DNA of 64,000 bases from Macrostomum lignano (taxonomy: Eukaryota): positions 1 to 64,000 of the forward strand of contig NIVC01002009.1 of assembly GCA_002269645.1 (NCBI GenBank), given 5' to 3'. The notes beneath the pieces are model-generated. The model ran no database searches. It saw only the letters and a program-made list of their open reading frames with translations, and was not told the origin of the DNA. Shown here in pieces: positions 11,553 through 55,829 of this stretch. The stretch's first letter is position 1, and the number at the start of each line of letters is the position of its first letter. The position numbers and the translations under genes were made by a program.

Positions 11553-12600
11553 TACAGACCGACCGACCATTATATCAGGACGTAGGCCGACCATTATATC
11601 AGGACGTAGGCCGACCATTATATCAGGACGTAGGCCGACCATTATATCAGGACGTAGGCCGACCATTATATCAGGACGTAGGCCGACCATTATATCAGGA
11701 CGTAGGCCGACCATTATATCAGGACGTAGGCCGACCATTATATCAGGACGTAGACCGACCATTATATCAGGACACAGACCGACCATATCAGGACACAGAC
11801 CGACCACTATATCAGGACACAGACCGACCATTATATCAGGACACAGGCCGACCATTATATCAGGACACAGACCGACCATTATATCAGGACGTAGGCCGAC
11901 CATTATATCAGGACGTAGGCCGACCATTATATCAGGACACAGACCGACCATTATATCAGGACACAGACCGACCACTATATCAGGACACAGACCGACCACT
12001 ATATCAGGACACATACCGACCATTATATCAGGACACAGACCGACCATTATATCAGGACACAGACCGACCACTATATCAGGACACAGACCGACCATTATAT
12101 CAGGACACAGACCGACCACTATATCAGGACACAGACCGACCACTATATCAGGACACAGACCGACCACTATATCAGGACACAGACCGACCACTATATCAGG
12201 ACACAGACCGACCACTATATCAGGACACAGACCGACCACTATATCAGGACACAGACCGACCATTATATCAGGACACAGACCGACCATTATATCAGGACAC
12301 AGACCGACCATTATATCAGGACACAGACCGACCACTATATCAGGACACAGACCGACCACTATATCAGGACACAGACCGACCACTATATCAGGACACAGAC
12401 CGACCACTATATCAGGACACAGACCGACCACTATATCAGGACACAGACCGACCATTATATCAGGACATAGATCAACCATTACCGGCTTTTCCCTTTTATA
12501 TCAAGACACAGTTCGTCCAATATATCAGACTCAGACTAACCATTGTAACAAAATACAGAGATCAACCATTGCCGGTATATCAGGACACAGACCAGCCAAG
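11553..12600. repeat. 24-bp minisatellite (ACCATTATATCAGGACACAGACCG), ~39 copies plus a decayed tail
   Basis: Directly visible tandem array; variant units (CGTAGG vs CACAGA, ATT vs ACT) occur in blocks. Confidence 0.97.
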
Positions 12601-13054: not shown

Positions 13055-16000
13055 TCACAGCACATACTTGTAGATCAGATAGGCTGCCAGAAGTACGCCA
13101 ATTGGGATGATGAAGCCAGTCCAAGAGCCGCCGTTGTCGCCGGCTCCGGCACCCTTGGACTCGGGACCAACAGCTGTCAGGCTGCTTTTCTTTTCCTTCT
13201 CGAGCACCTCGCCAATGAGGTACTTTTCCATCATCTCGCGCGCATCAGTGGAATGGCCGACATCTTCGAATGCCTCGGTGGAATAGCCGCCACCTTGTTC
13301 GAGAATCACCTCCTCGCCGCCAGGATGCTTGGAATGGGTTGATGGAGATAATATATAAAAACTAGAACTGTAAATTGATACCTTTGCTGTCTGCTCAGAC
13401 TAGTGCTACAGCCTATTCTCTCAGAGTAACTGACTGTACAATCTAGCAAACTGTCTATTCAACAAAGGTATTTTCAACTAACTAAAAAGCTAAGGCCTGA
13501 GAGACAAATATGGATATGAGATTTCTCAGTCTATACGAGAGTATTCTATACAATGGCTATATATATAGCTTTGTACAGAAATTGCAATTCATTTTTGCAT
13601 TTACACAATAAACTAGAAAATTATGATGTGCAAATATATGCACATGCTAGTTGCCTTATAAAAAACATTGATAGTGCTTGTTTTTAAAAAAATTAGGCTT
13701 TATTTTGACATAGTTTCTAACTAAATAGGCCTATATATAGCTCTATAAGAGATAGAAATCTGAAAGATAGATAAAAGAACAACAAAGGAGCCAGAGCTAA
13801 AACTAGACATAGAAGTTCAACTGGCACTAGCAGGAGTGATGAGGAAAGCCCTACCAAGTCACCCATTGCAGTGAGAAATCTGACCTAGACAAGCAAGAAC
13901 TAGCCCAGAACTGGTCCAGAGGGACAAAAGTCTTGGTTGGCAACAACCCCTAGTTTATAACAATAGCAAGAAGGCAAGAGGGACCTGGGGATGGCCTGGA
14001 CAGATTGAGGAAGGCCCAGAGTCCCAGACCCTACACGAAGATGGCCAGGAGAGGCTGATACAGAAAAGTAACACTAGACCTAATGTGCAGAAGGGAATAA
14101 TAATGGGGACTGGGATAGAATATATTGGGGTTGTGTCCCCACTTTTGACTAAATAAAAGGAGTGGAGCATAATTTTGCGCCACTTCTTTCCCTCCTACTA
14201 GGCTCGAGGCTTACTTTGATGTAATAGAATCTATTAACCAATATTTCGTATTAAACAACTCATTTGACTTAACTCTAGTGGCTCAGATTTACTTGAGACT
14301 AGCCATCTCACTCATGCATAGCTAGTCGAATAGTAGGATATATAGTTATAATCTCGATAGTGCACCTAGACTGCAACCATACTAGACTTCATATCAAAAA
14401 GCCAAACAAGTTATACATAGGGCACAAGAGTTTATGAGCTCAAAGCCAACTATTAGGGCATAGGAAATGGAGAGTTCCAGGTTCTAAGATAAGGAGATTT
14501 TCATAGGGATTGATTTTGTCAACCTAAACTTGAATAGAAACATAGAGACCTACTCAAGATTAGGTATTTATATTAATTAGTGTCCATAAAAATAACAAAC
14601 TAATTGTAGATATTAAATATATATAATTAAGTTCAAAAAGTCTATAGAGTTCAACAAAAAGTAGCAGCAAAATTTTTTTGCATTTCTTGCATTATATTTT
14701 TATATTAGATGCCCAGTCTATAGTCTAGAAAGTGGCCTTTATGCTAGAATTTTCTAGTATATTTTTGCCCTCACTGAGAATCTTGGCATACACTTAGCAT
14801 ATAGAATTTTCAGATTCAACATAAAGTGTACATAGTTGGCATACAAAAAATAGCCAAGTTCAAGGCTAAAATGTAATTATATAATTAAATATCAACTAAT
14901 ATCAAAAGCTCTTTAAAAATAATTGTAAACTAAAATAGAAAATATTAAAGAAATCATGAAAAAATCAAAATTAAAACAAAGAGTATCATTTTTTAACAAA
15001 AAACAGCTGTTTTAAAGTTTATTAAAAGTTTAGAATTCCAAAAAATATATATTTTTTAAAAAATGGCATATAAACAATTTTAATCTTGGTGTAAAAGTTT
15101 TTTTTAATTTTACATTGGCATAAAATTGAAAAAACATGAAATTTCATTCCAGTGTACACTTGCCATGATCTAGACTATGGTGCCTAGTGTTTAATAAAAA
15201 ATTTCAAACTAAACCTAACAAAGAAATTATAATTTTGTTTGTGATTTTAATATTTAATAATAAGGATTTCATAATAGCTAGAGATAATAGATAATGTAAA
15301 GGGCCCCTCCCGATTTCTTTCTAAAAATAGCTATCGGTTATTACATTTTAAATTCACGCCAAATAACTACGACGCATTTTGTTTTACTACTCGTATTTTT
15401 GATAATATTTTACGCGAATTAATTTTTGTTAAAAATCTAATAGAATTTTACTATAAATACAGGCAAATTTGGCGGAGGGAGAAGCAACCTCGCGCATCGC
15501 GGTTCAATAATACAAGTTGATAGCAATTAATAAGAGTTCCGAGAAAATAAGAATTGAAGAAGTGTTTTTCTGTGTTAATTCCTTTTAAGAAGTAAGAGTG
15601 AAGTAGACCGAAGCATATACAGCACATACTACTGAGAAGCAGCAGTGTTGAGTAGTAAGAATACGAAGTAGATCTGAAGTGATACGTGTAAGAATAACCG
15701 GAGGCTGTGACCCTCTGATCTCGGTAACGCCCAAGGACTTGCACAGTACATGGAATACATATACCAGTATAGCCAATAGACCACTCAGGCCAAAAGTACA
15801 GTAAACGCTACCAGAATAACGGAATAATATACTCAGACAAATTCTAAGAAACATTTATCGGATTATTCTAAGATTGATAAACTCATAATTTATTAATGGA
15901 ATAATCCTGGTGGCAGCTACCAACTTAATAAGAACACTTAAGAGATTAGTAAATTAGCCCTGTAACAGCTTTTGGTGGCTAATCGGAGGAATTTTGTATC

Positions 16001-19000
16001 GCACAGGAACACCCCTAGTACAACTTTGGTGTCAGCAGTTGAGATTTAAATAGAGAGAACCATAACCACTATTACAATTTGGTACCAGCAGTGGGATAGC
16101 TAAAGAGGGAAGCAAACCCCCTATCACAACTTTGGTGGCAGCGTAAAGGATCAGAGAAACGGCCAGAATATCAGAACTAGACAGATCAGAGAAACGGCCA
16201 GAATTTCAGAACTAGACAGATCAGAGAAACGGCAAAGAACTCCGGTAATTGAAGATCATCAGTGAGAAATTTTAGAATTAGGAACAGTAGTTAGAATCAA
16301 GAAGAAAGATGGCTAATGCCAATGATGCAATCGCTAGGCTAGCTGAAGAGCTGACAAAGAAGCTAGGATTAGGAACGGAGAAGCAAGTAGAGATTGAGAA
16401 GTACACACCTGACAAAAATATCAGGCAGTGGATCAATGCATTCGAGCAGCAATGCAGGATGCAAGGATTGAATGGAGAAAAACGGAAAGTAGCTCTTTTC
16501 GCCAATCTAGACATCCCAGAAGAACTGAAACGGAGGATGAGCCATAAACAAGATCAGCAGCACTATCAAGACATTAGGCGACAAGTTATTGAGCAGTTCG
16601 AAAGGAAGCAGCAGAAGCAGGAGGAGAATGGAGTCCAAGCCCTAGTTGAGTGCTTGATGACCCTGACGGTCATATTGACAAATCTGAACTTAGAACAGAA
16701 ATCAGAGCAGCAGCAGCAGTACAAGTACCAGACGGCGCCAAAATCGCGCCCGCCGCACAGATTTAGTGGCGCCAGACCAGAGCCAAGCCCTGGTCATTGC
16801 TTCTTCTGTGGGAAGCCAGGACCAATCAGGCCACAAGCAGGTCACAGATGCAGAGTGAATCTGGGAGAAGCCAGACAGCGAGCTCAGGAGAAAGGATGAG
16901 AGTAATTTTCTACTAGCACGAATCAAGCTAAGAAAATTGTACATAATGTATTTATAAAAATATAAAAAATTTATAAAAAGCTTCGAAAAGAAAATAAAAA
17001 TGACCGTACAGAGTATATAATGCACATAATTACCTAATGGAGCCCCAAAAGGGCCGTTTTAGCAAAAGACCGCTTATGTAAATCGCTAGCTCATTAAAAT
17101 GTTTGACATGCATGATTATTATAGTACTGTATTATGTAAATACGTCACTATTGCACAAATTTGCTTGAAGTAAAATAGCTCAGAAAGGTTTCCTTAACAA
17201 AATACGGTATAGAAGCCTCAGAAGGGCCGTTTTACCGAAGTTTTCGAGTAGACTCTTAGCATATTTGAAATGACTAGAATTAACACTATGTAACTGTGTA
17301 AATATTCACTATGTAAATAGCATACTAAATTACGCAAAATTAAGTCTCCAGAAGAGCCTTAAAGAATTAGGTGACCCCGAAAAGGGCCGTTTTGACAAAG
17401 AAAATTCAGAAAATCAACAAAAACAGGTTTAATTCGGTTAGTTAGGCTGCTCAGAAAGTAAGATAGGAAGTCTACCATAATAGTCGGAGTAGTGAGAAGC
17501 TCTGTGAAGAAGAAATAATTAAAGAATTAATGTAATAAACTCTGACAATAGGCAGTAGAGAGAAGAGAATACAGGACGCTGAGAAGTTGAATTGAAGAAG
17601 AAGACGAAGAATTTGAAAAGAGAAGCACGAGAATTTGAGAGGAATCGAGAATTAGAGAAGAAAAGGTGGGTTAGAAGCAAGAGGTAGACTAAAGACTTTT
17701 TGTCGCCATCGAGTGACGTAGTCTAGCCGCACCCTCAAGCGCTAATAGACACCAAGTAGAAGAGAATCAAGAGTAGTCAAGAAGCGAATTTGAAGAAGTG
17801 AATTCAAGAGAAGAATTCGAAGAAAAATCGAGAAGAAGTACATAAGCAAAGTCAAAGAAGTGAACCAGAAGAATTGAGAGTTTGATAAAGTGAGGAGAAA
17901 AATTGTGAGAAAAAGCCAAGAAAAATCCGATCAGCTATCTCATGGTGTCCCTCTTTAGATCAGATATCATTGCTGTCTAAATGGATGCGATAGTCTGTGA
18001 AGAACAAAAATAAGAGAGAGAATTCGAGAGATGAGCAAAGAGAAGAATTTGTCAGAGAAAAATTTAATTAAGAAAGAAGGAAAACTTTTCGATCCCGTTT
18101 AGGAAGGCACGGCACAGCCATTTTAAAGTCCTTTCTCAAGGATCCTGAAAAATTGGAGAAGAGAAATATGAGAGATGGAATACTGGAAGGAGTGCTCACT
18201 GTTCTTTTGGAGAAAGCAAGGTAGTCCAATGACAGCCAATTTTAGCCCATTCCTGAGAACATAGCATTTTTCGGAAAGTAAAGGCTTGAAACCAAACTAA
18301 TCCAATAATTGCATAACTTACTAACTAGAGAATGAGATAGAACCAAACGAAGAAGAATTTGAGCATGAAGATGAGTCAACAGATAGTGAGAAGACTGAGC
18401 CAGCCGAAACAGATGACGCATTAGAATTAGATAGGAGAGAAAGAAATGAAGACGAAAGGATTGAGCATAGGCCGCATTATAATTTGAGACCAAGAAGTGA
18501 GAGAGTTGTCACCTCAGGATTCGCCCCCGCAGGCGATACGGCCATTATCTGAAATGATCGAATTTGTACCATATCAAGTATCAAATTGTAAATAGAATTT
18601 GCTTAAAATCAGAAAAATTGCTCTGTAAATAGAAATCTGTTGTAAATAAAAAAAATTGACAAAAATATAAAAAGTTTAAAAATATAAAAACACAAAAACA
18701 TTGCGCATTACTAGTAGTAGAAATAAGAGAATTGTGTGAAGGAATCCGAAGTCAATAAATAATCCTAGCAACGCTTAGCAACGGTGCGCCGCTCTGAACC
18801 AATGAGAGCCCGCGAAGCGAACGCTAGAAAGCCACTATGGTTGACGAACACGTGACCCCACTAAACCCCTCGAAAGCGAAAGCGCGAACACAACGATGCG
18901 GTCCAGTTTTTCGGCTGGTCGCATATAAATACGAAACCCCATAGAGCTCACAAAACCTCATATTTCACAGCAATTAGTTCGTTCTTAGGAGACTAGAAAT

Positions 19001-21671
19001 TCTGTTATAGCGAATATGAGCCACGTTGACGATATTTTGGAAGAATTGCTGGGCGGAGCCCTGTCAGATAGCGACCTGTCAGAAGACGAAGCACCGAGAC
19101 AGCCGGCTCCAGCGCCAAGACCGCCGACTCCGCCGCCCGCTCCAGCTCCAAGACCGCCGACTCCGCCAGCCCCGAGCGCGTCAAGCCCGCGAGAGAGACC
19201 GTCAGCATCAGCGGAGATCGAGGCACCATTACGTTGCTCAACACGACCAAAGCTTCCAGGAGACTCCAGCAAGCGGCCGAGGCCGCCATCGCCAACGTCG
19301 AGCCAACGACTGCAGGTGGACGGGCCGACACCACCGAAGCGGGCAGCCATCCTGCAGGCCGCCGCCGCTGCTCCTGTGCGAGTTTATGCGGCACCTTCGA
19401 GTCAAGGATCGGCAGCCAGCAGCGCAGCATTCGAGCGACGGACAGTTCAGCTCCAGCCCCCAGCAAGTGCTCCACCATCGGGGCGACGCCAGCATGCCGC
19501 AGCCGCCGTCGTTACACCTCGCCAGCAGGCCGCCGCCGCCGCTACACCGCGCCAGCAGGCCGCTGCCGTCGTTACACCGCGCCAGCAGGCCGCTGCTACA
19601 CCTCGCCAGCAGGCCGCCGCCGCCGCTGCACCGCGCCAGCAGGTCGCCGCCGCCGCGCCCCGTCAGCAGGCCGCCGCTGCCGCTGCACCACGACCGCCAC
19701 GACCTGAGCTCGCAGGAAGCTACCAGGAGGTGGCACAACGCCTCATCGAGACAGGCGAGCCGGTCGAACGAGTTCGTTTCGGCCTGATGCAATATTTGCA
19801 GCGCATCGGCCACTTGCGCTTAGATCAAGCGCTGCCGCAACGTTCGCAGGCTTGGGCCGCCATCAGAGCGCTGCGCGAACTATGCTCATCAACCGAGGCA
19901 GTGGCGCTTCTCCAGCACATCGCCGAAGAGCTCCAGCGCATCATGAGAGCTGATTCTCAGGTAACCCAGCGACGCCTACTAAACATTGAATTGCGGTGGA
20001 TTTTTGGCCTCCTAGGCTGGCCCTATTTTCGTGAACTCCCGAACCCTTGCAAATTCTAGGCAGGTTTTCTTATTACCGGTGTGCTTTTCCGATCGTTTCC
20101 GTCGTATTTTTCTATGTTGTTTCTAATCTTCCAAATCTAGTTTACTAGTTTTTCTGTTTTATTCAATGGTAATTGCCACACATGATCTATCACTTTACTG
20201 CTTATCCGATTGTTTTGTTTTATGCCTTTATCACATAATTTTGTGCCTAATACTTTGCTCATGACTATTGCACGTAGTATTCACAAATTGTTTAGTTTTT
20301 AGCACTTCGTTTATGCACCTTTTCTTGCATTTTAAAATTTTTGCACTCGCATACTTATAGTAGACTGTAGTAAGCTCGTTTAAAAATTTTTTTTTAGGGG
20401 AGGCAGGTTGTAAAGGGCCCCTCCCGATTTCTTTCTAAAAATAGCTATCGGTTATTACATTTTAAATTCACGCCAAATAACTACGACGCATTTTGTTTTA
20501 CTACTCGTATTTTTGATAATATTTTACGCGAATTAATTTTTGTTAAAAATCTAATAGAATTTTACTATAAATACAGGCAAATTTGGCGGAGGGAGAAGCA
20601 ACCTCGCGCATCGCGGTTCAATAATACAAGTTGATAGCAATTAATAAGAGTTCCGAGAAAATAAGAATTGAAGAAGTGTTTTTCTGTGTTAATTCCTTTT
20701 AAGAAGTAAGAGTGAAGTAGACCGAAGCATATACAGCACATACTACTGAGAAGCAGCAGTGTTGAGTAGTAAGAATACGAAGTAGATCTGAAGTGATACG
20801 TGTAAGAATAACCGGAGGCTGTGACCCTCTGATCTCGGTAACGCCCAAGGACTTGCACAGTACATGGAATACATATACCAGTATAGCCAATAGACCACTC
20901 AGGCCAAAAGTACAGTAAACGCTACCAGAATAACGGAATAATATACTCAGACAAATTCTAAGAAACATTTATCGGATTATTCTAAGATTGATAAACTCAT
21001 AATTTATTAATGGAATAATCCTGGTGGCAGCTACCAACTTAATAAGAACACTTAAGAGATTAGTAAATTAGCCCTGTAACAGCTTTTGGTGGCTAATCGG
21101 AGGAATTTTGTATCGCACAGGAACACCCCTAGTACAACTTTGGTGTCAGCAGTTGAGATTTAAATAGAGAGAACCATAACCACTATTACAATTTGGTACC
21201 AGCAGTGGGATAGCTAAAGAGGGAAGCAAACCCCCTATCACAATAAACCTAGGTGAAATCTATTTCTTGATTTAAAATAATTTTTAGGCCCCTGTATTTT
21301 TTCAAGAGCTAGGGCCTAGCTCTTTCAATTAGGTCAACTTACACTTAAAGTGTTTTTAGAATAAAGTCTAGTTTTTGATATGACATTTATTGTTGGCTAA
21401 AATTAATATAAGCAATGATAATTTCTGTTCTTATTTTTAATCTTAGGCCTACTCCTGAATGTGACTGTGACATTTAGATTTATCATTTGAATTTTGATAG
21501 GCCTAGTATCATATCATCTAGTCTTACTCATGAATAATTTCCAAAAAATGGTCTTACCTCTGTCAGAAATTTTGTAACATCATAGACTTTGTCATGTATT
21601 ATGATCCAACAGCTCTCTGGTGTTTTGTGTTCCTCAACTTCTTTTTTGGATATCTGGCGCAAGATGGTCAT
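13055..21671 (-). CDS. CYB5: Cytochrome b5, tail-anchored, 2 exons (21671-21558, 13327-13055), 128 aa, 8.2-kb intron
   Basis: [38 protein letters not shown]|[11 protein letters not shown]...[17 protein letters not shown] with both heme-ligand His, and a C-terminal TM anchor. Phase-0 GT-AG intron. Confidence 0.96.
15295..16128 (+). repeat. 5' LTR
   Basis: Direct repeat of 20409-21242 (offset 5114); TATA-like TATAAAT at ~15452. Confidence 0.97.
15908..16150 (+). other. Array of five tRNA primer-binding-site-like motifs, four preceded by an LTR-end-like TRNNACA; the last (16133-16143, TGGTGGCAGCG, tRNA-Leu type) is the PBS used by this copy
   Basis: TGG-starting motifs at 15908, 15973, 16027, 16080 and 16133; ACA ends at 15967, 16022, 16076 and 16128. 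Confidence 0.85.
16309..16899 (+). CDS. gag: Gag-like protein (196 aa) with a degenerate zinc knuckle
   Basis: First ORF after the PBS; capsid-like ..[19 protein letters not shown]..; CFFCGKPGP knuckle remnant. Confidence 0.8.
   Translation: MANANDAIARLAEELTKKLGLGTEKQVEIEKYTPDKNIRQWINAFEQQCRMQGLNGEKRKVALFANLDIPEELKRRMSHKQDQQHYQDIRRQVIEQFERKQQKQEENGVQALVECLMTLTVILTNLNLEQKSEQQQQYKYQTAPKSRPPHRFSGARPEPSPGHCFFCGKPGPIRPQAGHRCRVNLGEARQRAQEKG
17950..18552 (+). pseudogene. Decayed integrase/pol C-terminal remnant
   Basis: Open stretch 18325-18552 encodes an acidic tail ending RPHYNLRPR, typical of Gypsy pol ends. Upstream frames are broken, with only weak SKVV(H)-like traces. Confidence 0.5.
18764..18930 (+). 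promoter_or_regulatory. Putative internal Pol II promoter for the cargo ORF
   Basis: Tandem TAGCAAC RFX half-sites (18764-18782), CCAAT (18799-18803), CACGTG (18849-18854), TATAAAT (18924-18930); ATG at 19016. Confidence 0.6.
19016..20059 (+). CDS. Unknown 347-aa cargo protein of the LTR element (acidic N-terminus, Pro-rich region, (T/A)PRQQAAAA repeats, helical C-terminal domain)
   Basis: Intact ATG-to-stop ORF forming a sharply bounded GC-rich island between the pol remnant and the PPT. Confidence 0.8.
   Translation: MSHVDDILEELLGGALSDSDLSEDEAPRQPAPAPRPPTPPPAPAPRPPTPPAPSASSPRERPSASAEIEAPLRCSTRPKLPGDSSKRPRPPSPTSSQRLQVDGPTPPKRAAILQAAAAAPVRVYAAPSSQGSAASSAAFERRTVQLQPPASAPPSGRRQHAAAAVVTPRQQAAAAATPRQQAAAVVTPRQQAAATPRQQAAAAAAPRQQVAAAAPRQQAAAAAAPRPPRPELAGSYQEVAQRLIETGEPVERVRFGLMQYLQRIGHLRLDQALPQRSQAWAAIRALRELCSSTEAVALLQHIAEELQRIMRADSQVTQRRLLNIELRWIFGLLGWPYFRELPNPCKF
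20396..20407 (+). other. Polypurine tract
   Basis: AGGGGAGGCAGG immediately before the 3' LTR. Confidence 0.85.
20409..21242 (+). repeat. 3' LTR (contains all four att/PBS modules)
   Basis: Appears identical to the 5' LTR by eye, and the ORF-track peptides are identical; ends TATCACA followed by the TSD. Confidence 0.97.
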
Positions 21672-28269: not shown

Positions 28270-28828
28270 TTAATTAACGGTGGTTAGATTACCGGTGGTA
28301 GATTGGCGACTGATGGTGGTAGGTTGATGGTGGTAGGTTGACTATTGACGGTGGTAGATTGACGGGGTGGATTGGCGGTGGTAGATTGATGGTGGTAGAT
28401 TGACGGTGGTAGGTTGATTGACAATGGTAGATTGATGGTGGTAGATTGATGGTGGTGGATTGACGGTGGTAGACGGGCGATGGTAGATTGACGGTGGTAG
28501 ATTGATGGTGGTAGATTGGCGACTGATGGTGGTAGGTTGGCTATTGACGGTGGTAGATTAGCGGTGGTGGATTGGCGGTGGTAGATGGAGGGTGGTAGAT
28601 TGGCGGTGGTGGATTGGCGGTGGTAGATGGAGGGTGGTAGATTGGCGGTGGTGGATTGGCGGTGGTAGATGGAGGGTGGTAGATTGGCGGTGGTAGATGG
28701 AGGGTGGTAGATTGGCGGTGGTAGATGGAGGGTGGTAGATTGGCGGTGGTGGATTGGCGGTGGTAGATGGAGGGTGGTAGATTGGCGGTGGTAGATGGAC
28801 GGTGGTAGATTGGCGGTGGTAGATCGGT
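28270..28828. repeat. GGTGGTAGATTGGC-type minisatellite (12-15-bp subunits)
   Basis: Visible tandem array, homogeneous in its right half. Confidence 0.93.
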
Positions 28829-29530: not shown

Positions 29531-32500
29531 TCAGAAGAACTTTGTCCTATTCAGCGCCTGATCTGCCACAACACTGTCGTCAGACATCAGCTTGTCCCAG
29601 TCGGTGCCGCAGGCTACAAAACCCAGCCGTTTCCGCTTGGCCTGTTCGCGCAGCTCCTCCAGATCTGCCCAGCGAACTCGCTTCCTACCGGCGGCCGTAC
29701 CGGAGTCCTCGCCGGCAGCTGGCATGCTCATGTATTCCGTCAGTAACTCGCGCGCCGATGTAGCCTTCTGCTGCTGCGACTGCGCACCCTGCTGATGCCG
29801 CAAGCCGTCCAGTCGTTCCAGCTGAGCGTCCCGATCGGCCTCGGACTCCCACTTGCTGGGCACGAACAGCCGGCCGTCTCCGGCCACCGCATCTGGCTCA
29901 GCGTCCTCCTCATTGTTGACCTCAGCGTTCCCCGCCTTGCCGCTGTCCCCAGCCTCCGCGTCGCTGGCATCGGCGTCGTCCATTTCAACCAGGGCGATGT
30001 CCGACTCCTGCAGCAGCGAGCTGGCGTCTAGCCGGCGATAGCCGCACCCGCCAACCGATGTTGTCATTGGCAACGGTTGCCAGAACTGGGCGACGGCCTC
30101 TACTTCGGCCAGACTGCGGCCGTGGATGCCGCGCTGGGCGCAGACAGCCGGCGAGGCGCCGGAAACGTCCAGAGCGAATGGCGAGTAGCCGCAGCGACTG
30201 GCAGCGCTGATGAATGGCGTCAGCTGGTCCAGCGTCTCCAGCGGGCAATCCACAATGATGAAGGGGAACAGGCCAGTCTCCAGCTGCTTGCTGAACGCTT
30301 TCAGCAGGCTGGCCCTGTACATTGGCTCTGCGTCGGCGTCGTATTCGTAGCGACCGTCCATGGTGAAATAGTCATCGATGCTGAGGATTCGAGGAGGCTG
30401 ACCGCCCTGTTAGATGTTGGGTGTGACGCGTTTGCACAAGTAAGTTCAAAGCTGTGCCTTTTCTGGGCCTTCTTCACCTTATGAAGGGGTCAGCAAACTG
30501 CGGCCCGCGAAGCCTCCTATCCGGCCCTCGGGTCCTTTGACACTTCATAATACGAAGTAGCAATCCGGCCCGCTCAAGGCTTGCGTCTTTCTATCCATTT
30601 CACTCCATTCTCTTCTCTCCTCTCCATTCTCTTCTCTCCTCTTCCATTCTCTCGTCTCCTCTTCCATTCTCTCATCTCCTCTTCAATTCTCTCATCTCCT
30701 GTCCCTTCTCTTCTCTCCTCTCCATTCTCTTATCTCCTCTTCCATTCTCTCGTCTCCTCTTCAATTCTCTAATCGCCTCTTCAATTCTCTCATCTCCTCT
30801 TCCATTCTCTAATCTCCTCTTCCATTCTCTCGTCTCCTCTTTAATTCTCTCATCTACTTTTCCATTCTTTCATCTCCTTTTCCATTCTCTTATCTCCTCT
30901 TCAATTCTCTTATCTCCTCTTCAATTCTCTTATCTCCTCTTCCATTCTCTCGTCTCCTCTTCCATTCTCTCATCTCCTCTTCCATTCTATCGTCTCCTCT
31001 TCCATTCTCTCATCTCATCTTCCATTCTCTAATCTCCTCTTCCATTCTCTCATCTCCTCTTCAATTCTCTCATCTCCTCTTCCATTCTCTCATCTCCTGT
31101 CCCTTCTCTTCTCTCCTCTCCATTCTCTTATCTCCTCTTCCATTCTCTCGTCTCCTCTTCAATTCTCTAATCTCCTCTTCAATTCTCTCATCTCCTTTTC
31201 CATTCTCTTATCTCCTCTTCAATTCTCTTATCTCCTCTTCCATTCTCTCGTCTCCTCTTCCATTCTCTCATCTCCTCTTCCATTCCCTTGTCTCCTCTTC
31301 AATTCTCGTATCTCCTCTTCCATTCTCTCATCTCCTCTTCCATTCTCTCATCTCCTCTTCCATTCTCTCATCTCCTCTTCCATTCTCTATCTCCTCTCCA
31401 TTCTCTTCTCTCCTCTCCATTCTCTTCTCTCCTCTCCATTCTCTAATCTCCTCTTCAATTTTCTCATCTCATCTCCTCTACCTTCTCTACTCTCTCCATT
31501 CTCTCATCTCCTCTTCCATTCTCTTATCTCCTCTTGCATTCTCTTATTTCCTCTCTATGTTTTTCCTCTCTTCACTACTCTGGTCCGCAGTTATGCAATA
31601 GATTCTCAATCTGGCCCCGGTGAGTAAAAAGTTTGCCGGCACCCGGCATACAGTTACACCTGTGGTGCACTTAGAAATCATAAGCCAAGCAACAAACCGG
31701 TGCTTAAAACTCGCTATGGATCACCGCTTCTATCTGAGAACCTTGAGCCATATGGAGCTCCTATTTTTTCCGATGGAGGGAGTGTGGTCAATAAAGGCTT
31801 TTGTCATCATCCATAGGGTCGAAAACTCTCAGCTACGTCCTCTATTCACTTTGCTGAAATTTAGTTTTCCACCAAGTTGATTACTTAAAGTAGAAAGGCC
31901 TGAAATTATTTAAAAGAAAAACAAACCTGTTGCATCTCTTTCTCTTTGATGAGGCGGGCCAATCTGCTTTTCCCTGCGCCAGGCAGTCCGCGCAGTAAAA
32001 TGCACAGGTTGTGCGGCCGGCTCTGCCTACCGGGCTGGCACAGCAAGCTTAACAGGTCCACCGGTGGCTCCAGAGCCGGCTGCGACGCTTCTTTCAACGA
32101 ACGAGCCGCAGCTGAAGCGAATAGCGGCTTCGGTTTTGACTGTTGCTGCGACGGCGACTGCAACTGCTGGATCTGCATCAGAGGCTGCACAGCTGGCTGC
32201 TGATCAGGCTTTGAGATCTGGTGCTGCATCAAAGGCACTGGTTGCGACTGCCGGGAAGGGCCGGCAAAGCCTTGCGCCTGGTAAGGACGACCTTGGGATT
32301 GCCAATCCTGGCGCTGGGGAGGCTGCCTACTTTTATTTGGTTGGTGGTAAGACTGATGCCGCTCATCTTGCTGTGGAGGCTGGAAGTTTGAGAAACTGCG
32401 CTGCTGCTGAGTTACTTGAGCTTGTTGAAAATTCTGGTAACCTCTGTGCGGTTCTTCACGTTTTTCACGCTCAAGCTGAACAATCCCATATGGCAAGCCT

Positions 32501-37994: not shown

Positions 37995-39090
37995 ATCAGC
38001 GCCCCCCGTTGGGGAGCCAAAAAAATGCAGCAGAATTTTTTTTAATAAACTACATGTCAGCGTCTCTTTGCATTATAGCTCAGCAACGCCTTGTAAGCCT
38101 TGACATGTCAGCAATTCCCCCCCCCCCACAAGCCTTAGCATATCAACTCCCCCTTGACATCTCAGCAATGCCCCCATAAGCCTTGAAATCTTAAAAAATC
38201 TTTCAACCTTCTAACCCTAACCCTAGTCTAACCCTAGCCCTAACCCTAACCCTAACCTTAAAGCATTGACATTTCAGTAATTCTCTGTGAGAGTCATTAT
38301 AGCACTACAGCATTCTAGCAATTCCCTGCAAGCCTTGACATCATAGGGATTCCAAAATGAATCTCTTAACTTCGACATGAAGCTTCTTTTATTTTTTACA
38401 TTACACTTTATCTATCAGCGATCCCTCCCATGAAGAGCCAATAAATAATGAAAACATTTTTCAATAAACTACATGTAGCTTGTGAATTTAGCCTTGACAT
38501 CTCAGTTATTCCCCCATGAGCCTTGACATCTCAGCTATTCCCCCTGTAAGCCTTGATATATTATTATTAATGATGCCCCCCATAAACCTTGATATCTGAA
38601 AAATCCCCTGTTAATCTTGAAACCCACTAAAATCTAACCCTCAACCCTGCAACCCAAACCTGACCTAAACCTAACTTTAACCCAACCTAAAGCCTTGAAT
38701 CTCAGCAATTCTTCTCCCCTAAGCCTTGACATTTTAGTGATTCCTTAGTTAAGAATCACAGCACTATAGCGATTCCCTCCAAGCCTTGGCATCGTAGCAA
38801 TTCCCAAATGAATCTTTTAACTTTGACATCATGACTTTTCTTTTATGTATACATGGTGCTTCTTTTCTTTTTTATATGACTCTTCTTCTATCAGCGCCCC
38901 CCATAGCAAGCCAACAAAGAATGTAATAAAAAATTGAGTAAAGTACATGAACTTTGAAGTAGCTTCTGACATTTGCTTCTTTGCTTCTCTGACATCTCAG
39001 AACCCCCCCCCCCCATAATCTCAGTTATTCTCCGTGAGCCTTGACATCTTAGTAATTCTCCCCAGCACAGCACAATAGCTTCATTTAATT
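37995..39090. repeat. Complex ~430-480-bp tandem repeat (~2.5 copies) with AGCCTTGACATCTCAGCAATTCCC subrepeats and (CCCTAA)n tracts
   Basis: Recurring ATCAGCG.CCC anchors at ~37995, 38414 and 38890; telomere-like hexamers at 38211-38257 and, degenerate, at 38635-38690. Confidence 0.75.
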
Positions 39091-39099
39091 TTTACATGA

Positions 39100-39740
39100 C
39101 ACTTCTTTCATGTCTGACATTACGCTTATTTTAATTTTTTACATGACGTTTCTTTTATTCTTCTATGACGCTTCTATAATTTCTCAAATGACACTTGTAT
39201 TAGTTTTTATATGAGGCTTCTATGATCTTTTGATGACCCTTCTATGATTTTTTACATGACACTTCTATGATGTTTTGATGACACTTCCAGGATTGTTTAC
39301 ATAACGCTTCTATGATTGTTTACATGACGCTTCTATGATTGTTTACATGACACTTCTATGATTTTTTACATGATGCTTCTATGATTTTTTACATGACATT
39401 TCTATGATCTTTTGATGACGCTTCTATGATTTTTTACATGACACTTCTATGATTTTATTACATGACACTTCTATGGATTTTTACATGACTCTTCTATGAT
39501 TTTTTACATGACACTTCTATGATTTTTTACATGACACTTCTATGATCTTTTGATGACCCTTCTATGATTTTTACATGACACTTCTATGATCTTTTGATGA
39601 CACTTCTAGGATTGTTTACATGACGCTTCTATGATTGTTTACATGATGCTTCTATGATTGTTTACATGACACTTCTATGATTTTTTACACAACACTTCTA
39701 TGATTTTTTACATGACGCTTCTATGATTTTTCTATGGTTA
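39100..39740. repeat. 21-23-bp minisatellite (ATGACACTTCTATGATTTTTTAC)
   Basis: Visible tandem array. Confidence 0.93.
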
Positions 39741-43499: not shown

Positions 43500-46400
43500 A
43501 TGAATCGCTACCAGACCCTTAAGCAGCTGGGCGATGGCACCTACGGCTCTGTGCTGCTCGGCACCCTCACCGAGACCAGCGAGAAGGTGGCCATCAAAAA
43601 GATGAAGAAGAAGTTCTACAACTGGGACGAGTGCCTGAATCTTCGCGAAGTGAAGTCCCTTCGCCGGCTGAACCACCCCAACATTGTCCGCCTCAAGGAG
43701 GTGGTCCGCGAGAACGACTACCTGTACCTGATATTCGAGTACATGCAGGAGAATCTGTACGAGGTGATGAAGAAGCGGACTAAGCTGTTCCCAGAGGAGG
43801 TGGTGCGCAACATCGTCTGGCAGTGCACGGACGGCCTGGCCTACATGCACCGGATGGGCTTCTTCCACCGCGACTTGAAGCCGGAGAACATCCTGTGCAA
43901 TCCGGACCATCACATCAAGCTGGCGGACTTCGGCCTGGCCAGGGAGATCCGGTCCAAGCCGCCCTACACGGACTACGTGGCCACCCGCTGGTACCGCGCG
44001 CCGGAGATCCTGCTCCGCTCCACCTCCTACAACTCGCCTATTGACGTGTTCGCCATGGGCTGCATCATGGCTGAGCTGTACACCTTCAGGCCGCTGTTCC
44101 CCGGCAGCTCGGAGATCGACATGATCTTCAAGATCTGCTCGGTGCTCGGGACGCCTCGCAACGACGATTGGCCTGAAGGCTTCCAACTGGCGGCCGCTAT
44201 GAACTTCAAATTCCCGCAGTGCATCGCCACGCAGCTGTCCTCGCTGATTCCCAACGCGTCAACCGACGGCATCGCCATCATGCTGGACATGCTGGCCTGG
44301 AACCCCAAGCACCGGCCCAATGCCAAGGACGCGCTGAAGCATGCCTACTTTGCGGCCAGCAGTCAGCGGCTGCAGCCCAATGCCGCTAGCGCCAGGAGGC
44401 AGCCGTTTAATAATAGGAGCAATGGACAGGTAAATAGGAGCTTATCGCCTGCTTTAGTTAGATTTTCTAAACATATCGGCAGTTCATTCTTATTCAATTT
44501 AGTGATGGTTTTTACTTTTTGAAAATGCTTCAGACACTGCTTATTTTAAAGATGGGTTTTGGGATTAAGGTTACGAGAGTTCTTAGGGATGGGAATTAAA
44601 AATCCAAATCTTAGTGATAAGAATTTAAAGCCCAATTTTAGGGATAGGAATTTAAGATCCCAATCTGAGGGATGGGAATTCGGGATCCCAATCTGAGGGA
44701 TGGGAATTTGAGATCCCAGTCTGAGGGATGGGAATTTGAGATCCCAATCTGAGGGATGGGAATTTGAGATCCCAATCTTAGGGATGAGAATTTGAGATCC
44801 CAATCTTAGGGATGCTAGTTTGCGATCTCAATGTTTGTTCAGTCTGTTGTTATGCTTTTAATTAAGCTGGTAGTCTATCTACCTGTACTGCAACTTTCAG
44901 GTACCGATCGCTGAAGTGTCGCCCCTGCAGCAGCAACAGCAGCAGCAGCTGGTGCAGCAGCGCCAGGAATCCGTGACCGTCCCCGTGCCGGGCGCCAAGT
45001 CCAGCCGGAACCGCTGGGCCGGCGGCGGCCAAGGCCCGGACGCCAAGGACAGCTTCGACCAGCTCATGGACGACTTCGATCTGAGCTACAGCAGCAAGCC
45101 AAAGATGGCCAGGCAGCACCAGCAGCCGCTGCCCGGGCTGTCCCGGCCGCAGCAGCCAGCTGCCAAGGCGTTCCCGGCTCCGCCCGCCGCTAACCGGCAG
45201 GGCGCCACCGACAGCTGGATGGATGCCGACGAGGATTTCAGCAGCTTCTTGGGTCGGCCAGCGCAGCCGCCGCAGCAGCAGCAGCAGCCGGCAAGGGGGC
45301 ACCAGGCCTCGTATCTTGGCGGCGGCAACCGCGCCCACGGAGGCAACCCCGGCATTGGCGGCGCCAATCGGCGAGAGAGCATCGATATTGACGACATCCT
45401 GGGCTCGAATCTGCTAGGCGGACCGACCAGCGGCAAACGGGTGCAGCCACAGGTTGGTCTTTGTTGTGCTTAGATGGAGAGTTTGCTACTGCTGTCCTAG
45501 ATTATTTCATCTTTGTTGGGGTAGCCATCCTCCCAGAGCCTCAGTTCCAGTTGCTAAGATCCTCAGTTGCTGAGCCGCCACTTTCCCAAATCGTGGTGCC
45601 ACTTGCAATCCTCCCACCTCCCCTAAGCTGAACGTCTAAATCCCCCGAACCGCATCCCCAAATCCCCTAAACCGCATCCCCAAATCCTCAAACCGCATCC
45701 CCAAATCCCCTAAACCGCATCCCCAAATCCCAAACCGTATCCCCAAATAATCTAAACCGCATCCCCAAATCCCCTGAACCGCATCCCCAAATCCCCAAGC
45801 CGCATCCTCAAATCCTCTAAACCGCATCCCCAAATCCCCAAACCGCACCCCAAATCCCCCAAACTGCATCCCCAAATCCCCCAAATCCCCCAAACCGCAT
45901 CCCCAAATCCCCAAGCCGCATCCCCAAATCCCCAAGCCGCATCCCCAAATCCCCCAAACCGCATCCCCAAATCCCCAAGCCGCATCCCTAAATCCCCTAA
46001 ACCGCATCCCCAAATCCCAAACCGCATCCCCAAATCCCCAAGCCGCATCCCCAAATCCCCCAAACCGCATCCCCAAATCCCCAAGCCGCATCCCCAATTC
46101 CCCCAAACTGCATCCTCAAATCCCCAAGCCGCATCCCCAAATCCTTCAACGCAAATCCGCTCCCCCAATCGCAGATGTCCGGCAAGCCGGCCGGCTCCGA
46201 CCTGCCCGCCATGGGCGGCCGCCGGGACTCCGGGAAGCAGTCGGCGGGCTCGCTGTACAAATCGCGGTCCCGCTACCTGCCCGGCATCAACCCCAAGAGC
46301 ATCGGCTCCAACGCGGCCGTCGATCCGTTCAGCATGGGCGGCGGCAGCTACGGCGCCGGCTACGGAGCTCAGCAGCAGCAGCCTGGCCGGGGCGGCGGCG

Positions 46401-49113: not shown

Positions 49114-52100
49114 GCAAATCAGCAGCAGCAGCAGCCGCGCGGCATCGTGAGCTACCAGCCCGGCCCGCCCGCTGGCGCCCCCGGCGCGCCCGGCGTCACC
49201 CGCCTGCTGCTGCCGCGCGGCCTACCGGCATCAACGGCCGGCCAGATGATCCGCGTCTCGCCCGCATTGCCAGGCGCCGCCGCCACTGGCGCCTTCCCGG
49301 TTGCCATTCTGCCGCCTGGCGGTGGCGCCACCTCAGTTGCTGGTGTGCGGCCGCAGCTGCTGCAGCAGCAACAGCAAGTCATCCGGCTTGGCTCATCGCA
49401 GCAGCCGCAGTTCTACCAGCTGCAGAGAGCGACTGCTCAGCAGCAGCCTCAGCCAGCCGCTTCATCGTCTGTGCAGAGTCAGGCCCCGCCGCAGTACCAG
49501 TACCGCATTATCGTGCCTAGCAACACCTCGCTAAGGCGGCTGAGCGTGCTGAGCTTCAGCAGCTCGCAGGTGCCGGATTTGTCCACCGCCACAGAGGCCA
49601 GCCTGCAGCGACTTGGCAGGTTCGGCCGCCTGCCCACCGCCGTTGCAGCGGCAGCCGCGGCAGCCGCTGAGGCCGAGAATCCCAGCCAGCAGCAGCGCCC
49701 GATGTACGGCGAGGGCAGCGCCTACAGACAGGCCGAACGGGACGAGGCCAAGAAGCGGAAACACGCCGGGGCGCTTCGGTGAGATCTGCGGGTGTCCGCT
49801 CGTCTGGCTGGGGTGTCCGCCGGTTTTAATGAGGTGTCCGTCTGCAGTGTTGGAGGGTGTCTGACTGCAGTGTTAGAGGGTGTCCGTCTGCATTGCTAAG
49901 AGAGTGTCCGTCTGCAGTGTTGGATGGGAGGGTGTCCGTCTGCAGTGTTGGATGGGAGGGTGTCCGTCTGCAGTGTTGGATGGGAGGGTGTCCGTCTGCA
50001 GTGTTGGAGGGGAGGGTATCCGTCTGCAGTGCTAAGAGGGTGTCCGTCTGCAGTGCTAAGAGGGTGTCCGTCTGCAGGGCTAAGAGAGTGTCCGTCTGCA
50101 GTGTTGGATGGGAGGGTGTCCGTCTGCAGTGCTAAGAGGGTGTCCGTCTGCAGTGCTAAGAGGGTGTCCGTCTGCAGGGCTAAGAGAGTGTCCGTCTGCA
50201 GTGTTGGATGGGAGGGTGTCCGTCTGCAGTGCTAAGAGGGTGTCCGTCTGCAGTGCTAAGAGGGTGTCCGTCTGCAGTGCTAAGAGGGTGTCCGTCTGCA
50301 GTGTTGGATGGGAGGGTGTCCGTCTGTAGTGCTAAGAGGGTGTCCGTCTGCAGTGCTAAGAGGGTGTCCGTCTGCAGTGTTGGAGGGTGTCCGTCTGCAG
50401 TGTTGGATGGGAGGGTGTCTGTCTGCAGTGTTGAATGGGAGGGTGTCCGTCGGCAGTGTTGGATGGGAGGGTGTCCGTCTGCAGTGCTAAGAGGGTGTCT
50501 TTCTGCAGTGTTGGAGGGTGTCCATCTGCAGTGTTGAGAAGGTGTCCGTCTGCAGTGTCCGTTTGCTTTTTTTAATTGTGTCTACGCTCGTATCTGTCCA
50601 TCTTAAGTGTTTATCCGTATTTTATCTAACTGTCTGGGGTGTCCATCTCGATCCATGTATATTTTGGTCTATACCAGCCGCTGCCCTCGCCCCCGCCTTG
50701 CAGCCGGTTCAACCCCTTCAACCAGCCGATGCAGCTGTCCTTCACCGGATCAGGTCGCGATGCCGCCAAAAAGTTCAAAGGCTCGCGCGAGGGCGGCATC
50801 ACGGCCAACGCCGCCTACTGGGTGTTCATGAAGAGCGAAGCCAACAACACCTTCGAGGCTCTGCCCGCGGACGACTTCTACAAGTTCGTGCCTGACGTGG
50901 CCTACCGGCACTTCAACTCGGAGGAGGCGGAGGAGGAGTTCAACAAGCGGGACAAGACGCTCAACAAGTACAACCTGATGCTGCGGCACCGTCTCAACGC
51001 CAAGGACGAGGGCGGAGGCGAGGAGAAGTCGGCTGGCGACAAGGACGGCGACGACGGCGAGGATCTAGACCGGGGAGACGGCGGCGGTGGCGGCGGCCGA
51101 TCGTCGCGTCGGTCGCGTCTGCAGCTGACCGACATGGACGAATTCGGCGACGAGGCCGGCGATTCGGACGAAGCCGACGCTGACGATCGCGACGGGGGAA
51201 CGGCGGCCACCTCGAAGTCCGGCGGCCGGAGCGCCGGCCCGGCCGCTTCGTCGTCAAAGAAAGGAGGCGCTGCCGGCGGTGGGCGCGGCAAGCGTCGGGC
51301 GCCGCGGTTCAAGCGCAAGCGAAAAGAGGGCCAGCCTGGCAGCGAGGACGAAGGCGGCGGCGAGCGTGACCCGGACGGCGAAGTCGAAGACGAGTCGGAG
51401 CTGGACGATCACGAGGGCGACGAGCTGGACTACCTGACCCACAGCAGCTCTGGCAGCGTGTCCGAGTCTGAGAAGGTGGACATCTACGAGGAGAAGGGCC
51501 TGGACCAGGAGGACGCCATGAAGGGCCTGCTGGTGTCCGACGAAGAGGAGAGCGAGACCGAGGGCGGTGCCGCCGCCGGTGCCGACGGTGAGAAAAACGG
51601 TGCCGAGAATGACGCGTCGACCAGCAAGAAGTCGGCGGCCGGGAGCAAGCCGAGCAAGTCTGTCGGCAAAGGCGCCGATGAGGATGACGGGGAAGACGGC
51701 GAGGACGAGGAGGACAGCGACAGAAGCGGCGGCGGCGGCGGCAGCGGCTCCGACGACTCCTCGGACAGAAAAACTTCCAAGAAGGAGAAAAAGCAGCAAC
51801 ATAAGAAAAAGAAGAAGCACAAGAAAGCTAAGCAGCCTTCCCCGGCTAAGGAGACGGAGAGGCGCGAGGCGCTGGTGAAGCGCATCAAGGAGAAGGCGCA
51901 GCTGGGTGGGGAGGCAGTCTCTGACGGGCCGCCAGCCAAGCGCCAGAAGACGTCGTCAGCTTCGGCTGGCCAGGCGGCCAACCTGATCGACGAGTCGTTG
52001 ATTCGGCACTACCTGGGCAGGCGGCCGATGACGCTGGCCGAGCTGTCCAAGAAGCTGCGCAGCAAATATAAAAAGTACAAGGAGACCAACAAGTCGGTGC

Positions 52101-53233: not shown

Positions 53234-54576
53234 ATGTACCGCCTGTACAGACAGGTGCCAGTCGCGGGCCGCTACCTGCTGCTGTGCCTGTACCTGTGCC
53301 TGTGGGTGTTCGCCCTCTTCAACTACAGCAGCAGGTGCCGCTACTCGCAGCCGGACGTCTTCATTGAAGACTGGCCAGCCGACGACTCAAGGCTGAAGTC
53401 GGGCCGCTGTTACCTGCGGCGGGACAGCCTCCAGCTGCAGCCAATAGATATGCATAATGCACCTGAGCTGCATCATCTAGAGACTGCTCTGGCTGGTCCC
53501 GAAGTTCCGGCACAGATGAGGTTGCGTCCTGGCGGAAGCTGGGCTCCATCAAACTGCACCCCACTGCAACACGTAGCCGTGATGGTGGCCTTCAGGAATC
53601 GGGACTTTCACTTGCGGCTGCTGCTGAACCGGCTGCATCGGATGCTGAGAAGGCAGCTGATCAAGTACACTGTGTTTGTGGTTGAGCAGGTGAGTAATGC
53701 GTTAAGCAGTAACTTGAGCAGTTGAGCAGGCAGTTAAGCAGTGAGTTGAGCAGTGAGCTGTGAATTGAGCAGGTGAGCAGGCAGTTGAGCACTGTGTTTC
53801 AGCACGTAAACAGACTTAAGCAGATAGAGGCAGCTTCTAAAATCTACCCAGCCTCTGTGCCCCATCACCCAGACCGGACCGGAGCCCTTCAACCGAGGCA
53901 TGCTGATGAACGTTGGCGTGGTGGAGGCCCTGAAGCTGGCCAGCTTTGACTGCTTCATCTTCCACGATGTGGACATGATTCCCGAGCACGATCGGAATGT
54001 GTACCTGTGCGATGAGAACGCCAGGCACCTGGCATCCGCCATTGACGAGATGCGGTATCACGTGATGTTCTACAACTACCTCGGCGCTGTGCTGGGTGAG
54101 TAGCTATGCCGATATGTATCGTTTGACGTGTTGTTAGTAAGCGGGATTAAAACCAGTTCTCTTCCCATCGGTCGTGTGCAGCGATGAGCAGCAAGAACTT
54201 CTTCCGCATCAACGGCTTCTCCAACGTGTACTGGGGCTGGGGCAACGAGGACGACGACATCAGCGCCCGCACGATGGAGGCCGGCATGCTGGTGTCCCGT
54301 CCGCCGCCCACCCTCGGCCGCTACAAGATGGTGCGCCACCCCAAGGCCGTCCGCATCGAGAGCGGCAACGAGTACTTCATGGCCTGGCGGGCCAGGCACT
54401 ATGAGGACGGGCTGAACGCGCTGAGCAGGGCCTCGTACTCAGTGCTGAGTCGCCAGGCGATGCCTTTGTACACAAACATCTCCGTGCGGCTGTCCCGCCA
54501 GCGGCATCGAATAACGCCCGAGTGGCTGTCCAACTCGGACTCCGTATGGTGGTTTCTGCGATTCTACTATCCATAG
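53234..54576 (+). CDS. Beta-1,4-galactosyltransferase family (GT7), copy 1, exons 53234-53689, 53873-54095, 54182-54576
   Basis: Type II TM N-terminus; VAVMVAFRNR..HL, FNRGMLMNVG, FIFHDVD, WGWGNEDDD, RYKMVRH motifs; consistent intron phases. Confidence 0.92.
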
Positions 54577-54674
54577 GCCGCCCTTTTTGACCCTGTCGAG
54601 TTGAGCTTTTGGCGCAGCGGTCCAGCCAAGAGGCATTCGCTCTTAGCAACTGCATTAGCGCCCCAATCACGCGG

Positions 54675-54855
54675 GTGAGTCGCCCATCAGCCCCACCTGA
54701 GAATCGCCCATCAGCCTCACATGAGAATCGCCCATCAGCCTCACATGAGAATCGCCCATCAGCCTCACCTGAGAATCGCCCATCAGCCTCACCTGAGAAT
54801 CGCCCATCAGCCTCACATGTGAATCGCCCATCAGACCCATCTGAGAATCGCCTCT
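54675..54855. repeat. 20-bp minisatellite (GAGAATCGCCCATCAGCCTC) 3' of the GT7 gene; also at ~62285-62445
   Basis: Visible array, one unit longer in copy 1. Confidence 0.9.
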
Positions 54856-55384
54856 AAATTACTGATAAAATCTGTCTTAATCCACTCCAGAGAGTCCGAA
54901 ACGGACCAACCGCAGTCAGCGCAACTCGCAGCCTGTATAGTCATAAAACTGAATGCTGAATTCTTTCACCGAGAGCTGCCCATATTGAAGTATTATTATA
55001 TAAACCTACCTTTGATGTACTATAGCTCCAATTGCAATCGGAATTATATTCCATTTTTTGTTTCGCTCAGCTTTGACTCTCCAGTTAATGCGAGTAAGTA
55101 ATATTATTGATTACTTATCCCTGGTGCTCGGTTCGTCAAATCGCAATATTATTTTAGGCTTTTCGCTTCCCTGAATTGGTAGTTTTTTCTATGTATTTTA
55201 CTGCAATGTCGGCGCTATACTACTATTAATAAATTAAATTGTTTAAATATAAATGATTTCTTGACGCTTCAATGTCATATTGATGTTCAGTTCACAGTTT
55301 TGTGAAATTACTCAGCTTATGTAATTGTTAAGTGAATTAAAAAAGCTTGCTTTGCTGGACATCGCTTCTTTGTTCATCGCTTAT

Positions 55385-55562
55385 CGGGGGCGCAGATAAG
55401 GAGGGGGGTTGGGCGCAGATAAGGAGGGGGGTTGGGCGCAGATAAGGAGGGAGTTGGGCTTAGAAAAGGAGAGGGTTGGACCCAGATAAATATGGGGGTC
55501 GGGCGCAGATAAGGAGGGGGGTGGGCACAGATAAGGAGGGGGTTGGGCGCAGATAATGAGGG
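55385..55562. repeat. G-rich ~22-bp minisatellite (GGGCGCAGATAAGGAGGGGGTT), short copy
   Basis: Paralog of 62973-63625. Confidence 0.85.
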
Positions 55563-55829
55563 GTAAGAGCACAACTGAGGAAAGAGGGTAAAATTGAATA
55601 GCCAATCAGAAGTAAGAGGGAGAGAGAAAAGAAACAGATTGAACTGGACAGAGGGAAGCAGCAAATAGAGGGACGACCGGACGAGGCAGTTTAACTGAAG
55701 AGATGACCAGACGACTTAGAAAGTTGCGACATCCAGAGCCATTATGCTTCTGACGAATGCGCCTGGATCCGAAAACCACCCTGCAAAATGTCTCGCAGTT
55801 ACTGTCATGCACATTTCGCTGACACTAAG

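Follow-up and report, generated by a model that had tools for sequence, protein, structure and literature searches.

Reiterated LTR-end and tRNA-Leu primer-site junctions inside the LTRs of a Macrostomum lignano retrotransposon

Described primer sites and the element of the window

Long terminal repeat (LTR) elements are normally described with one primer-binding site (PBS) and one fixed boundary between LTR and leader. Here we describe an LTR element of the flatworm Macrostomum lignano in which junctions resembling this boundary form a cassette of four modules that fills the last 220 bp of each LTR. The element lies in a stretch of 64,000 nt (GenBank assembly GCA_002269645.1, contig NIVC01002009.1, positions 1 to 64,000 of the forward strand), hereafter the window. 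With moderate confidence, we read the cassette as a turnover-prone stack of former U5-end/PBS junctions in a non-autonomous Ty3/gypsy-lineage element of Macrostomum. Tandem PBSs on one RNA were reportedly built into engineered retroviral vectors by Voronin and Pathak (J Virol, 2004), and each site is said to have been able to initiate. Downstream initiation reportedly carried the upstream PBS into the LTR, which is the step required by the explanation favoured here. By the same account those vectors were artificial, with two identical PBSs and no end resembling an integrase attachment (att) site before the second one, and were not a natural evolving array.

Among natural elements, the genomic RNA of Ty3 and of Drosophila Gypsy binds tRNA at more than one site, of which the 5′ site alone is needed for cDNA synthesis (PMC1635307). 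Their second site differs from the modules described here in that it lies near the RNA 3′ end, base-pairs with different regions of that same tRNA, is not in tandem and has no LTR-end motif. Plant Sireviruses possess multiple polypurine tracts (PPTs) clustered at the LTR junction, conserved across a divergent lineage and of unknown role (PMC2829016). These also reiterate a primer site beside an LTR junction, but they concern the other primer and the other junction, consist of identical octamers and belong to Ty1/copia elements in plants. In retroviruses, a PBS that has been altered returns to the sequence matching the primer actually employed (PMC11181671). That rewriting concerns a single PBS in experimental evolution, whereas the window LTR appears to preserve several states side by side. 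PBSs for tRNA-Leu are common in metazoan gypsy clades (PMC13524379, without mention of reiterated junctions), and the LTR elements of M. lignano are mostly Ty3/mdg4 (PMC12801592, a survey without discussion of PBSs). In the literature searched for retrotransposons with tandem, duplicated or multiple PBSs, no account of a junction array inside an LTR came up; the original prediction, made from this sequence without searches, likewise knew of none. The exact 18-mers of two of the modules (C and D, below) had no match in the literature searched.

All hallmarks of an LTR retrotransposon (TG...CA direct repeats, target-site duplication (TSD), PBS and PPT) are present in the window copy, on the plus strand. 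A direct repeat with 5114-bp spacing resolves into the two LTRs. The 5′ LTR (15295-16128; 834 bp, TGT...ACA) is a base-by-base 100% match to the 3′ LTR (20409-21242), the identity ending at 16129, and the cassette recurs at 21022-21242. The TSD ATAA flanks the element on the left (15291-15294) and, as the same 4 nt, on the right (21243-21246). The PPT, AGGGGAGGCAGG (20396-20407), is separated from the start of the 3′ LTR by a single T (20408). The active PBS (16133-16152) follows the LTR end after the 4-nt spacer ACTT and consists of TGGTGGCAGCG, 11 nt of Leu(AAG) type, and then TAAAGGATC. With identical LTRs, TSD, PPT and PBS all in place, the element is a recently inserted, bona fide LTR retrotransposon, and both of its LTRs carry the cassette. 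It is like a canonical metazoan Ty3/gypsy (Ty3/mdg4) element with a tRNA-Leu junction in its TG...CA LTRs, 4-bp TSD, PPT and PBS a few nt after the LTR. What sets it apart is that the LTR holds three or four repeats of the junction, whose Leu-type motifs differ.

The module cassette and its tRNA-Leu motifs

Each module consists of a PBS-like motif, a linker and an LTR-like end. Module A (15908-15967) runs from TGGTGGCAGC, with a 10-nt run of Leu(AAG) type, to the end CCCTGTAACA, and module B (15973-16022) from TGGTGGCTAATCGGAGGA, decayed to a 7-nt run, to CCCCTAGTACA. Module C (16027-16076) starts with TGGTGTCAGCAGTTGAGAT, which matches a Leu end of GTCAGCA type over 13 nt before it decays, and ends in CCACTATTACA. 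Module D (16080-16128) leads from TGGTACCAGCAGTGGGAT to CCCCCTATCACA, which is the true LTR end. At the junction of A with B, TGTAACA ends at 15967 and a GCTTT spacer precedes the B motif (from 15973); between B and C, TAGTACA ends at 16022 and ACTT precedes the C motif (from 16027). TATTACA (ending at 16076) and ATT likewise precede the D motif (from 16080), and TATCACA (ending at 16128) and ACTT the active PBS (from 16133). The closing grammar is CCCTnnnACA, 3-5 nt and a TGGT motif, and the ends mirror the 5′ terminus of the LTR, TGTAAAGGG. No ACA-type end precedes the first motif (15908). The original prediction had placed every motif at these positions and in both LTRs, as we find them. 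Its module lengths of 52-60 bp were less exact, since from TGG to TGG the modules measure 65, 54, 53 and 53 bp. Tandem Repeats Finder detected a 52-bp period across 16011-16136.

The four predicted combinations of end and motif are real and clustered beyond chance. The pattern T-NNN-ACA-N(3-5)-TGGT-NN-C has 4 matches within 170 bp, or 7 counting both LTRs, against an expectation of about 1.4 for the entire window, both strands included (200 first-order Markov simulations). A lone match at 48304 (minus strand) is not Leu-like past TGGTGTCA and was taken as chance. A scan of viral contigs for the junction plus PBS found no match. The cassette RNA was predicted to fold no more stably than shuffled sequences (z = +1.07), and a structured-RNA reading was dropped on this ground.

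The leader contains 35-bp tandem repeats (GATCAGAGAAACGGCCAGAAT.TCAGAACTAGACA; 16149-16258, plus strand), found with Tandem Repeats Finder and by reading, that resemble the module linkers. They end in CTAGACA, and the periodic array seems to run past the LTR minus its PBS part. One could take the whole cassette for an ordinary U5 minisatellite whose likeness to LTR ends and to tRNA-Leu ends is coincidental, as the window is rich in tandem repeats and the leader repeats lie beside the PBS. We find this scarcely credible given the strong clustering of the junction pattern, the exact 18/18 tRNA-Leu matches in module D and in a module of a close relative, and the same junction grammar in a relative whose DNA cannot be aligned to the window (both described below).

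The motifs were compared with tRNA ends from published mammalian probes and from metagenome genes, neither being those of the host. The mammalian 3′-end probes are TGGTGGCAGCGGTGGGAT for Leu(AAG), TGGTGGCAGTGGTGGGAT for Leu(UAG), TGGTGTCAGGAGTGGGAT for Leu(CAG) and TGGTGTCAGAAGTGGGAT for Leu(CAA), with TGGTGTCAG(G/A)AGTGGGAT as the joint form for Leu(CAG/CAA); Leu(UAA) starts with ACCAGGA at its 5′ end. Metagenome contigs were scanned for TTCRAATCCCACTGCTGRYA and ARAGORN was run on the matches. Genes ending in ...CTGCTGGTA were called as tRNA-Leu(TAA) (48) or Leu(CAA) (28), and those ending in ...CCCACTGCTGGTA as tRNA-Leu(TAA) or, in some cases, Leu(CAA). The group that ends in ...CTGCTGACA comprised Leu(TAG) (9), Leu(CAG) (2) and SeC(TCA) (1), together with 25 that ARAGORN left uncalled; an example among the latter resembles an intron-containing Leu(CAA) gene. 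ARAGORN detected no tRNA genes in the window or in the locus of the close relative.

The runs of tRNA-Leu match in modules A to D, from 5′ to 3′, are 10, 7, 13 and 18 nt. Module D matches the 3′ ends, plus CCA, of environmental Leu(TAA)-type tRNAs at 18/18 positions. Module C is a decayed site of Leu(CAA/CAG/TAG) type. The assignment of three motif types to tRNA-Leu, part of the original prediction, is supported by probes and metagenome genes alike. Its suggestion that the motif at 15973 might be Ile-like was rejected: the motif has only a 7-nt match to a tRNA-Leu end, and its counterpart in the close relative diverges beyond TGGTG. Separately, a metagenome contig (L099) contains TGGTGTCAGCAGTGGGATTCGAA without a tRNA body after it, which may be the PBS of an unrelated retroelement primed by the same Leu-type tRNA.

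Relatives of the element and turnover of the array

A complete relative was found in M. lignano contig NIVC01000269.1 (L001), the locus of a homologue of the window gag. Its LTRs are 997 bp long with one mismatch between them, its TSD is GTAC and a PPT is present. The internal region is 91% identical to window 16130-18812. Upstream of 15828 the two LTRs are unrelated, and from there they are about 93% identical through module A. This shared block (15828-15975, plus strand; BLAST and global alignment), putatively R plus the start of U5, may correspond to R, with modules B-D as U5. The L001 LTR ends in three modules, against four in the window. These are A′ (TGGTGGCAGCTACC...CCCTGTGACA, then GCTTT), B′ (TGGTGACAGTGTG...CCCCTAGGACA, then ACTT) and C′ (TGGTGGCAGCGGTGGGAT...ACCACTGTTACA, the LTR end, then ACTT and the PBS TGGTGGCAGCGGTGGGAT). 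The last of these internal modules exactly copies the 18-nt PBS plus ACAACTT, and both copies match the mammalian Leu(AAG) probe at 18/18 positions. The active PBS is TGGTGGCAGCGGTGGGAT-T in L001 and TGGTGGCAGCG-TAAAGGATC in the window. Taken together, the comparisons show that the youngest modules still complement tRNA-Leu in full, each with its own type, and that the oldest have decayed.

A second, more diverged LTR of the family adjoins the L001 copy on the other strand and has several junctions, among them GCCTAGCACA, GCT, TGGTTGCAGCAGTGGGAT. It is probably a solo LTR (L001 6533-7510, minus strand; TSD GTTT). A GC-rich insertion of about 150 bp interrupts its second module, and its last motif, TGGTTGCAGCAGTGGGAT, had no match among the tRNA ends checked.

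A more distant relative is a Logan contig (L122) that encodes Gag plus Pol, with PR, RVT_1 and RT_RNaseH in order, and ends before IN. The N-terminus of the window Gag is 38% identical to the Gag of this contig (P0010; E = 3e-21). As this homologous Gag is accompanied by a gypsy-type pol, the window element belongs by descent to the Ty3/gypsy lineage. The DNA of L122 cannot be aligned to the window, yet three internal junctions built by this grammar (for example CCCTGTAACA, AATT, TGGTGGC...) lie upstream of its TGGTGGCAGCGGTAAAGGATC and gag. The cassette is, by this comparison, a feature of the lineage. The active PBSs of L122 (919-939) and the window (16133-16152) share a non-tRNA tail, (G)TAAAGGATC, after a Leu(AAG) match of 11-13 nt. 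In elements with only 38% Gag identity, such sharing hints that sequence immediately 3′ of a short PBS is conserved, and the TAAAGGATC tail is probably a maintained feature because it recurs in L122. In another contig with a related gag (L124, 285-310), the sequence upstream of gag includes TGGTGGAGCAGCGTTGGAATTCGA, which is tRNA-like over a longer stretch and of another type.

Both complete copies have a 3′ LTR that closes at its last junction and is bordered directly by the TSD, so the last retrotransposition of each was primed at the last PBS. In support of the original prediction, the L001 LTR ends one module earlier than that of the window. The terminal junction of L001 (ACCACTGTTACA|ACTT|PBS) most resembles the internal third junction of the window (ACCACTATTACA|ATT|TGGTACC), and module D had no counterpart in L001 in the alignment. 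Since these arrays differ by one module and the terminal junction of one resembles an internal junction of the other, the boundary has moved in the history of the family. No leftover module was found in the L001 leader, and downstream modules were not seen in the leader of either complete copy.

When the window is compared with L001, identity is 95% for module A, about 88% for the leader and 91% for the internal region. Modules B-D are only 67-77% similar to any other module, without a clear one-to-one partner, and strict orthology of modules B and C is unsupported by the all-against-all identities. The alignments indicate that module gain, loss and scrambling in the array outpace sequence change in its flanks. 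In the nominal B and C pairs, the att-like 10 nt plus spacer are 86-93% identical and the first 7 nt of the motif 86%, against 45-73% for PBS positions 8-18 and 55-68% for the linkers. A set of ten internal junctions, taken from four elements, shows high information content at CCCT..ACA and at TGGTG.C and low content over PBS positions 8-18. The expectation that the functional anchors would be better conserved than the linkers therefore holds for the junction core; the inner motifs have not been kept as full 18-nt PBSs. The conserved unit is this core and not the full PBS.

Conservation of only this core of about 20 nt could point to an array of non-priming binding sites, in which CCCTnnnACA, NTT and TGGTGNC serve integrase or nucleocapsid, or dock tRNA-Leu for packaging. 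Extra non-priming tRNA-binding sites are known in Drosophila Gypsy and Ty3 (PMC1635307). We consider such a role quite improbable. No stable RNA structure is predicted, and the youngest modules copy the whole 18-nt PBS exactly, which argues for an origin as junction duplicates.

The favoured reading of the cassette as a stack of former junctions would account for these features as follows. Each module is a copy of the real LTR/PBS junction, in which a linker that closes with CCCTnnnACA (the end that integrase recognises) is followed by a spacer of 3-5 nt and by a tRNA-Leu PBS of 18 nt. The junction would be duplicated by template switching of reverse transcriptase, or when the PBS end of plus-strand strong-stop DNA anneals at the wrong stretch of PBS homology. 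If the downstream copy then served for priming, all sequence upstream of it, the older junction included, would be taken into minus-strand strong-stop DNA, by which that junction would enter U5 and hence both LTRs. The PBS in use would be rewritten from the primer tRNA, as is established in retroviruses for the primer actually used (PMC11181671), and successive junctions would record Leu isoacceptors of AAG, GTCAGCA and TAA type while buried junctions decayed. Homology of the core would drive turnover, which would also explain core similarity. The difference in active PBS between the window and L001 would fit resolution of a heteroduplex between an RNA-templated and a tRNA-templated PBS. This model needs host Leu(AAG/TAG) ends of the form ...CGCTGCCA, a host Leu ending in ...CTGCTGACA and a Leu(TAA) ending in ...CTGCTGGTA.

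Another explanation follows the original prediction, which likened the modules to an acquired array: selection would keep several junctions working, so that priming could start at any of them with different Leu isoacceptors, or the inner sites would soak up PBS-targeting 3′ tRNA fragments. Its mechanistic logic is sound, in that each junction would yield an integrable end. Each motif has its own att-like end mirroring the LTR 5′ terminus, module D is a perfect 18-mer of an isoacceptor type other than that of the active PBS, and the junction that is terminal in one relative is internal in another. The cores have been kept across deep divergence and the architecture occurs in all four relatives. 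Repression of LTR elements through the PBS by 3′ tRNA-derived fragments (tRFs) is known in mammals (PMC7472051; bioRxiv 10.64898/2026.01.22.698655). We nevertheless regard this adaptive explanation as doubtful: the last junction alone was used in both complete copies, the inner PBS positions 8-18 are poorly conserved, with module B essentially gone, and no copy was seen with downstream modules remaining in its leader. The broader proposal, that selection maintains alternative LTR-end-plus-PBS junctions in a flatworm Ty3/gypsy lineage while the boundary slides and the Leu primer changes or 3′ tRNA fragments are titrated, seems to us unlikely.

Several points also weigh against the stack of former junctions. 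The core is conserved in every one of the ten internal junctions, which could signal selection and not homology-driven turnover, and those ten are partly non-independent. Measured against the 11-nt run of the active PBS, the runs of module A (10 nt), module C (13 nt) and module D (18 nt) would not make clearly worse primers, so that priming at inner sites is conceivable. Three or four junctions persist in every relative seen, including the autonomous L122 with its distant Gag, and pure relics might be expected to vanish in some lineages. The sample is small, with two copies that are complete, one that is partial and a single probable solo LTR, and the tRNA ends used for comparison came from outside the host.

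Coding content, surrounding sequence and implications

The window copy has a gag-like open reading frame (ORF) of 196 aa with a broken zinc knuckle (16309-16899, plus strand; ORF list and homologues), 81% identical to the M. lignano hypothetical protein BOX15_Mlig008906g1. Distant homologues carry zf-CCHC, one such Gag being from M. lignano. The ORF list and Pfam revealed no pol (in the order PR-RT-RNaseH-IN) within the 4.2-kb internal region, and the copy is therefore non-autonomous. Pfam searches of two internal ORFs found no significant family. A GC-rich ORF of 347 aa with PRQQAAAA-type repeats lies inside the element (19016-20059). It had no homologue in the protein collection searched and is missing from the L001 relative, with which the alignment breaks off near 18812; the element may have captured it or received it as an insertion. 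Look-ups of the exact products gave no record for the window gag or for two ORFs near it. A megablast of the LTR against a phage collection found nothing, as expected for a eukaryotic element, for which a bacterial promoter and terminator scan was also uninformative.

Elsewhere in the window, a direct repeat of about 2.6 kb (53240-55817 and 60844-63881) is 94-100% identical in blocks; its copies are spaced by about 7.6 kb, and satellites of 24 bp and 23 bp lie in both. The pair could be very long LTRs or a segmental duplication. Many long satellite arrays, with units of 14-28 bp in as many as about 90 copies, occupy much of the window (11561-12481, 28344-28824, 30604-31554, 39089-39731, 45638-46144, 49833-50558, 55828-57133 and 58871-60593), an abundance that would fit a very repeat-rich genome. 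An interstitial telomere-like repeat, (CTAACC) x 8.7, was found at 38211-38261 (TTAGGG-type on the other strand).

Because the junctions carry differing tRNA-Leu types and close relatives have different terminal junctions, a natural array of this kind would show both movement of the LTR boundary in evolution and fluid choice of isoacceptor primer. In such families, LTR ends could be set wrongly by annotation tools that accept the first PBS-like sequence they meet after a CA. The array is also a natural substrate for testing primer switching and evasion of PBS-targeting 3′-tRF silencing, and M. lignano is suited to such tests, with transgenesis (PMC5730564) and heat-inducible LTR elements (PMC12801592). 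If selection did maintain the alternative junctions, the array would be a built-in escape from primer shortage or tRF-based silencing.

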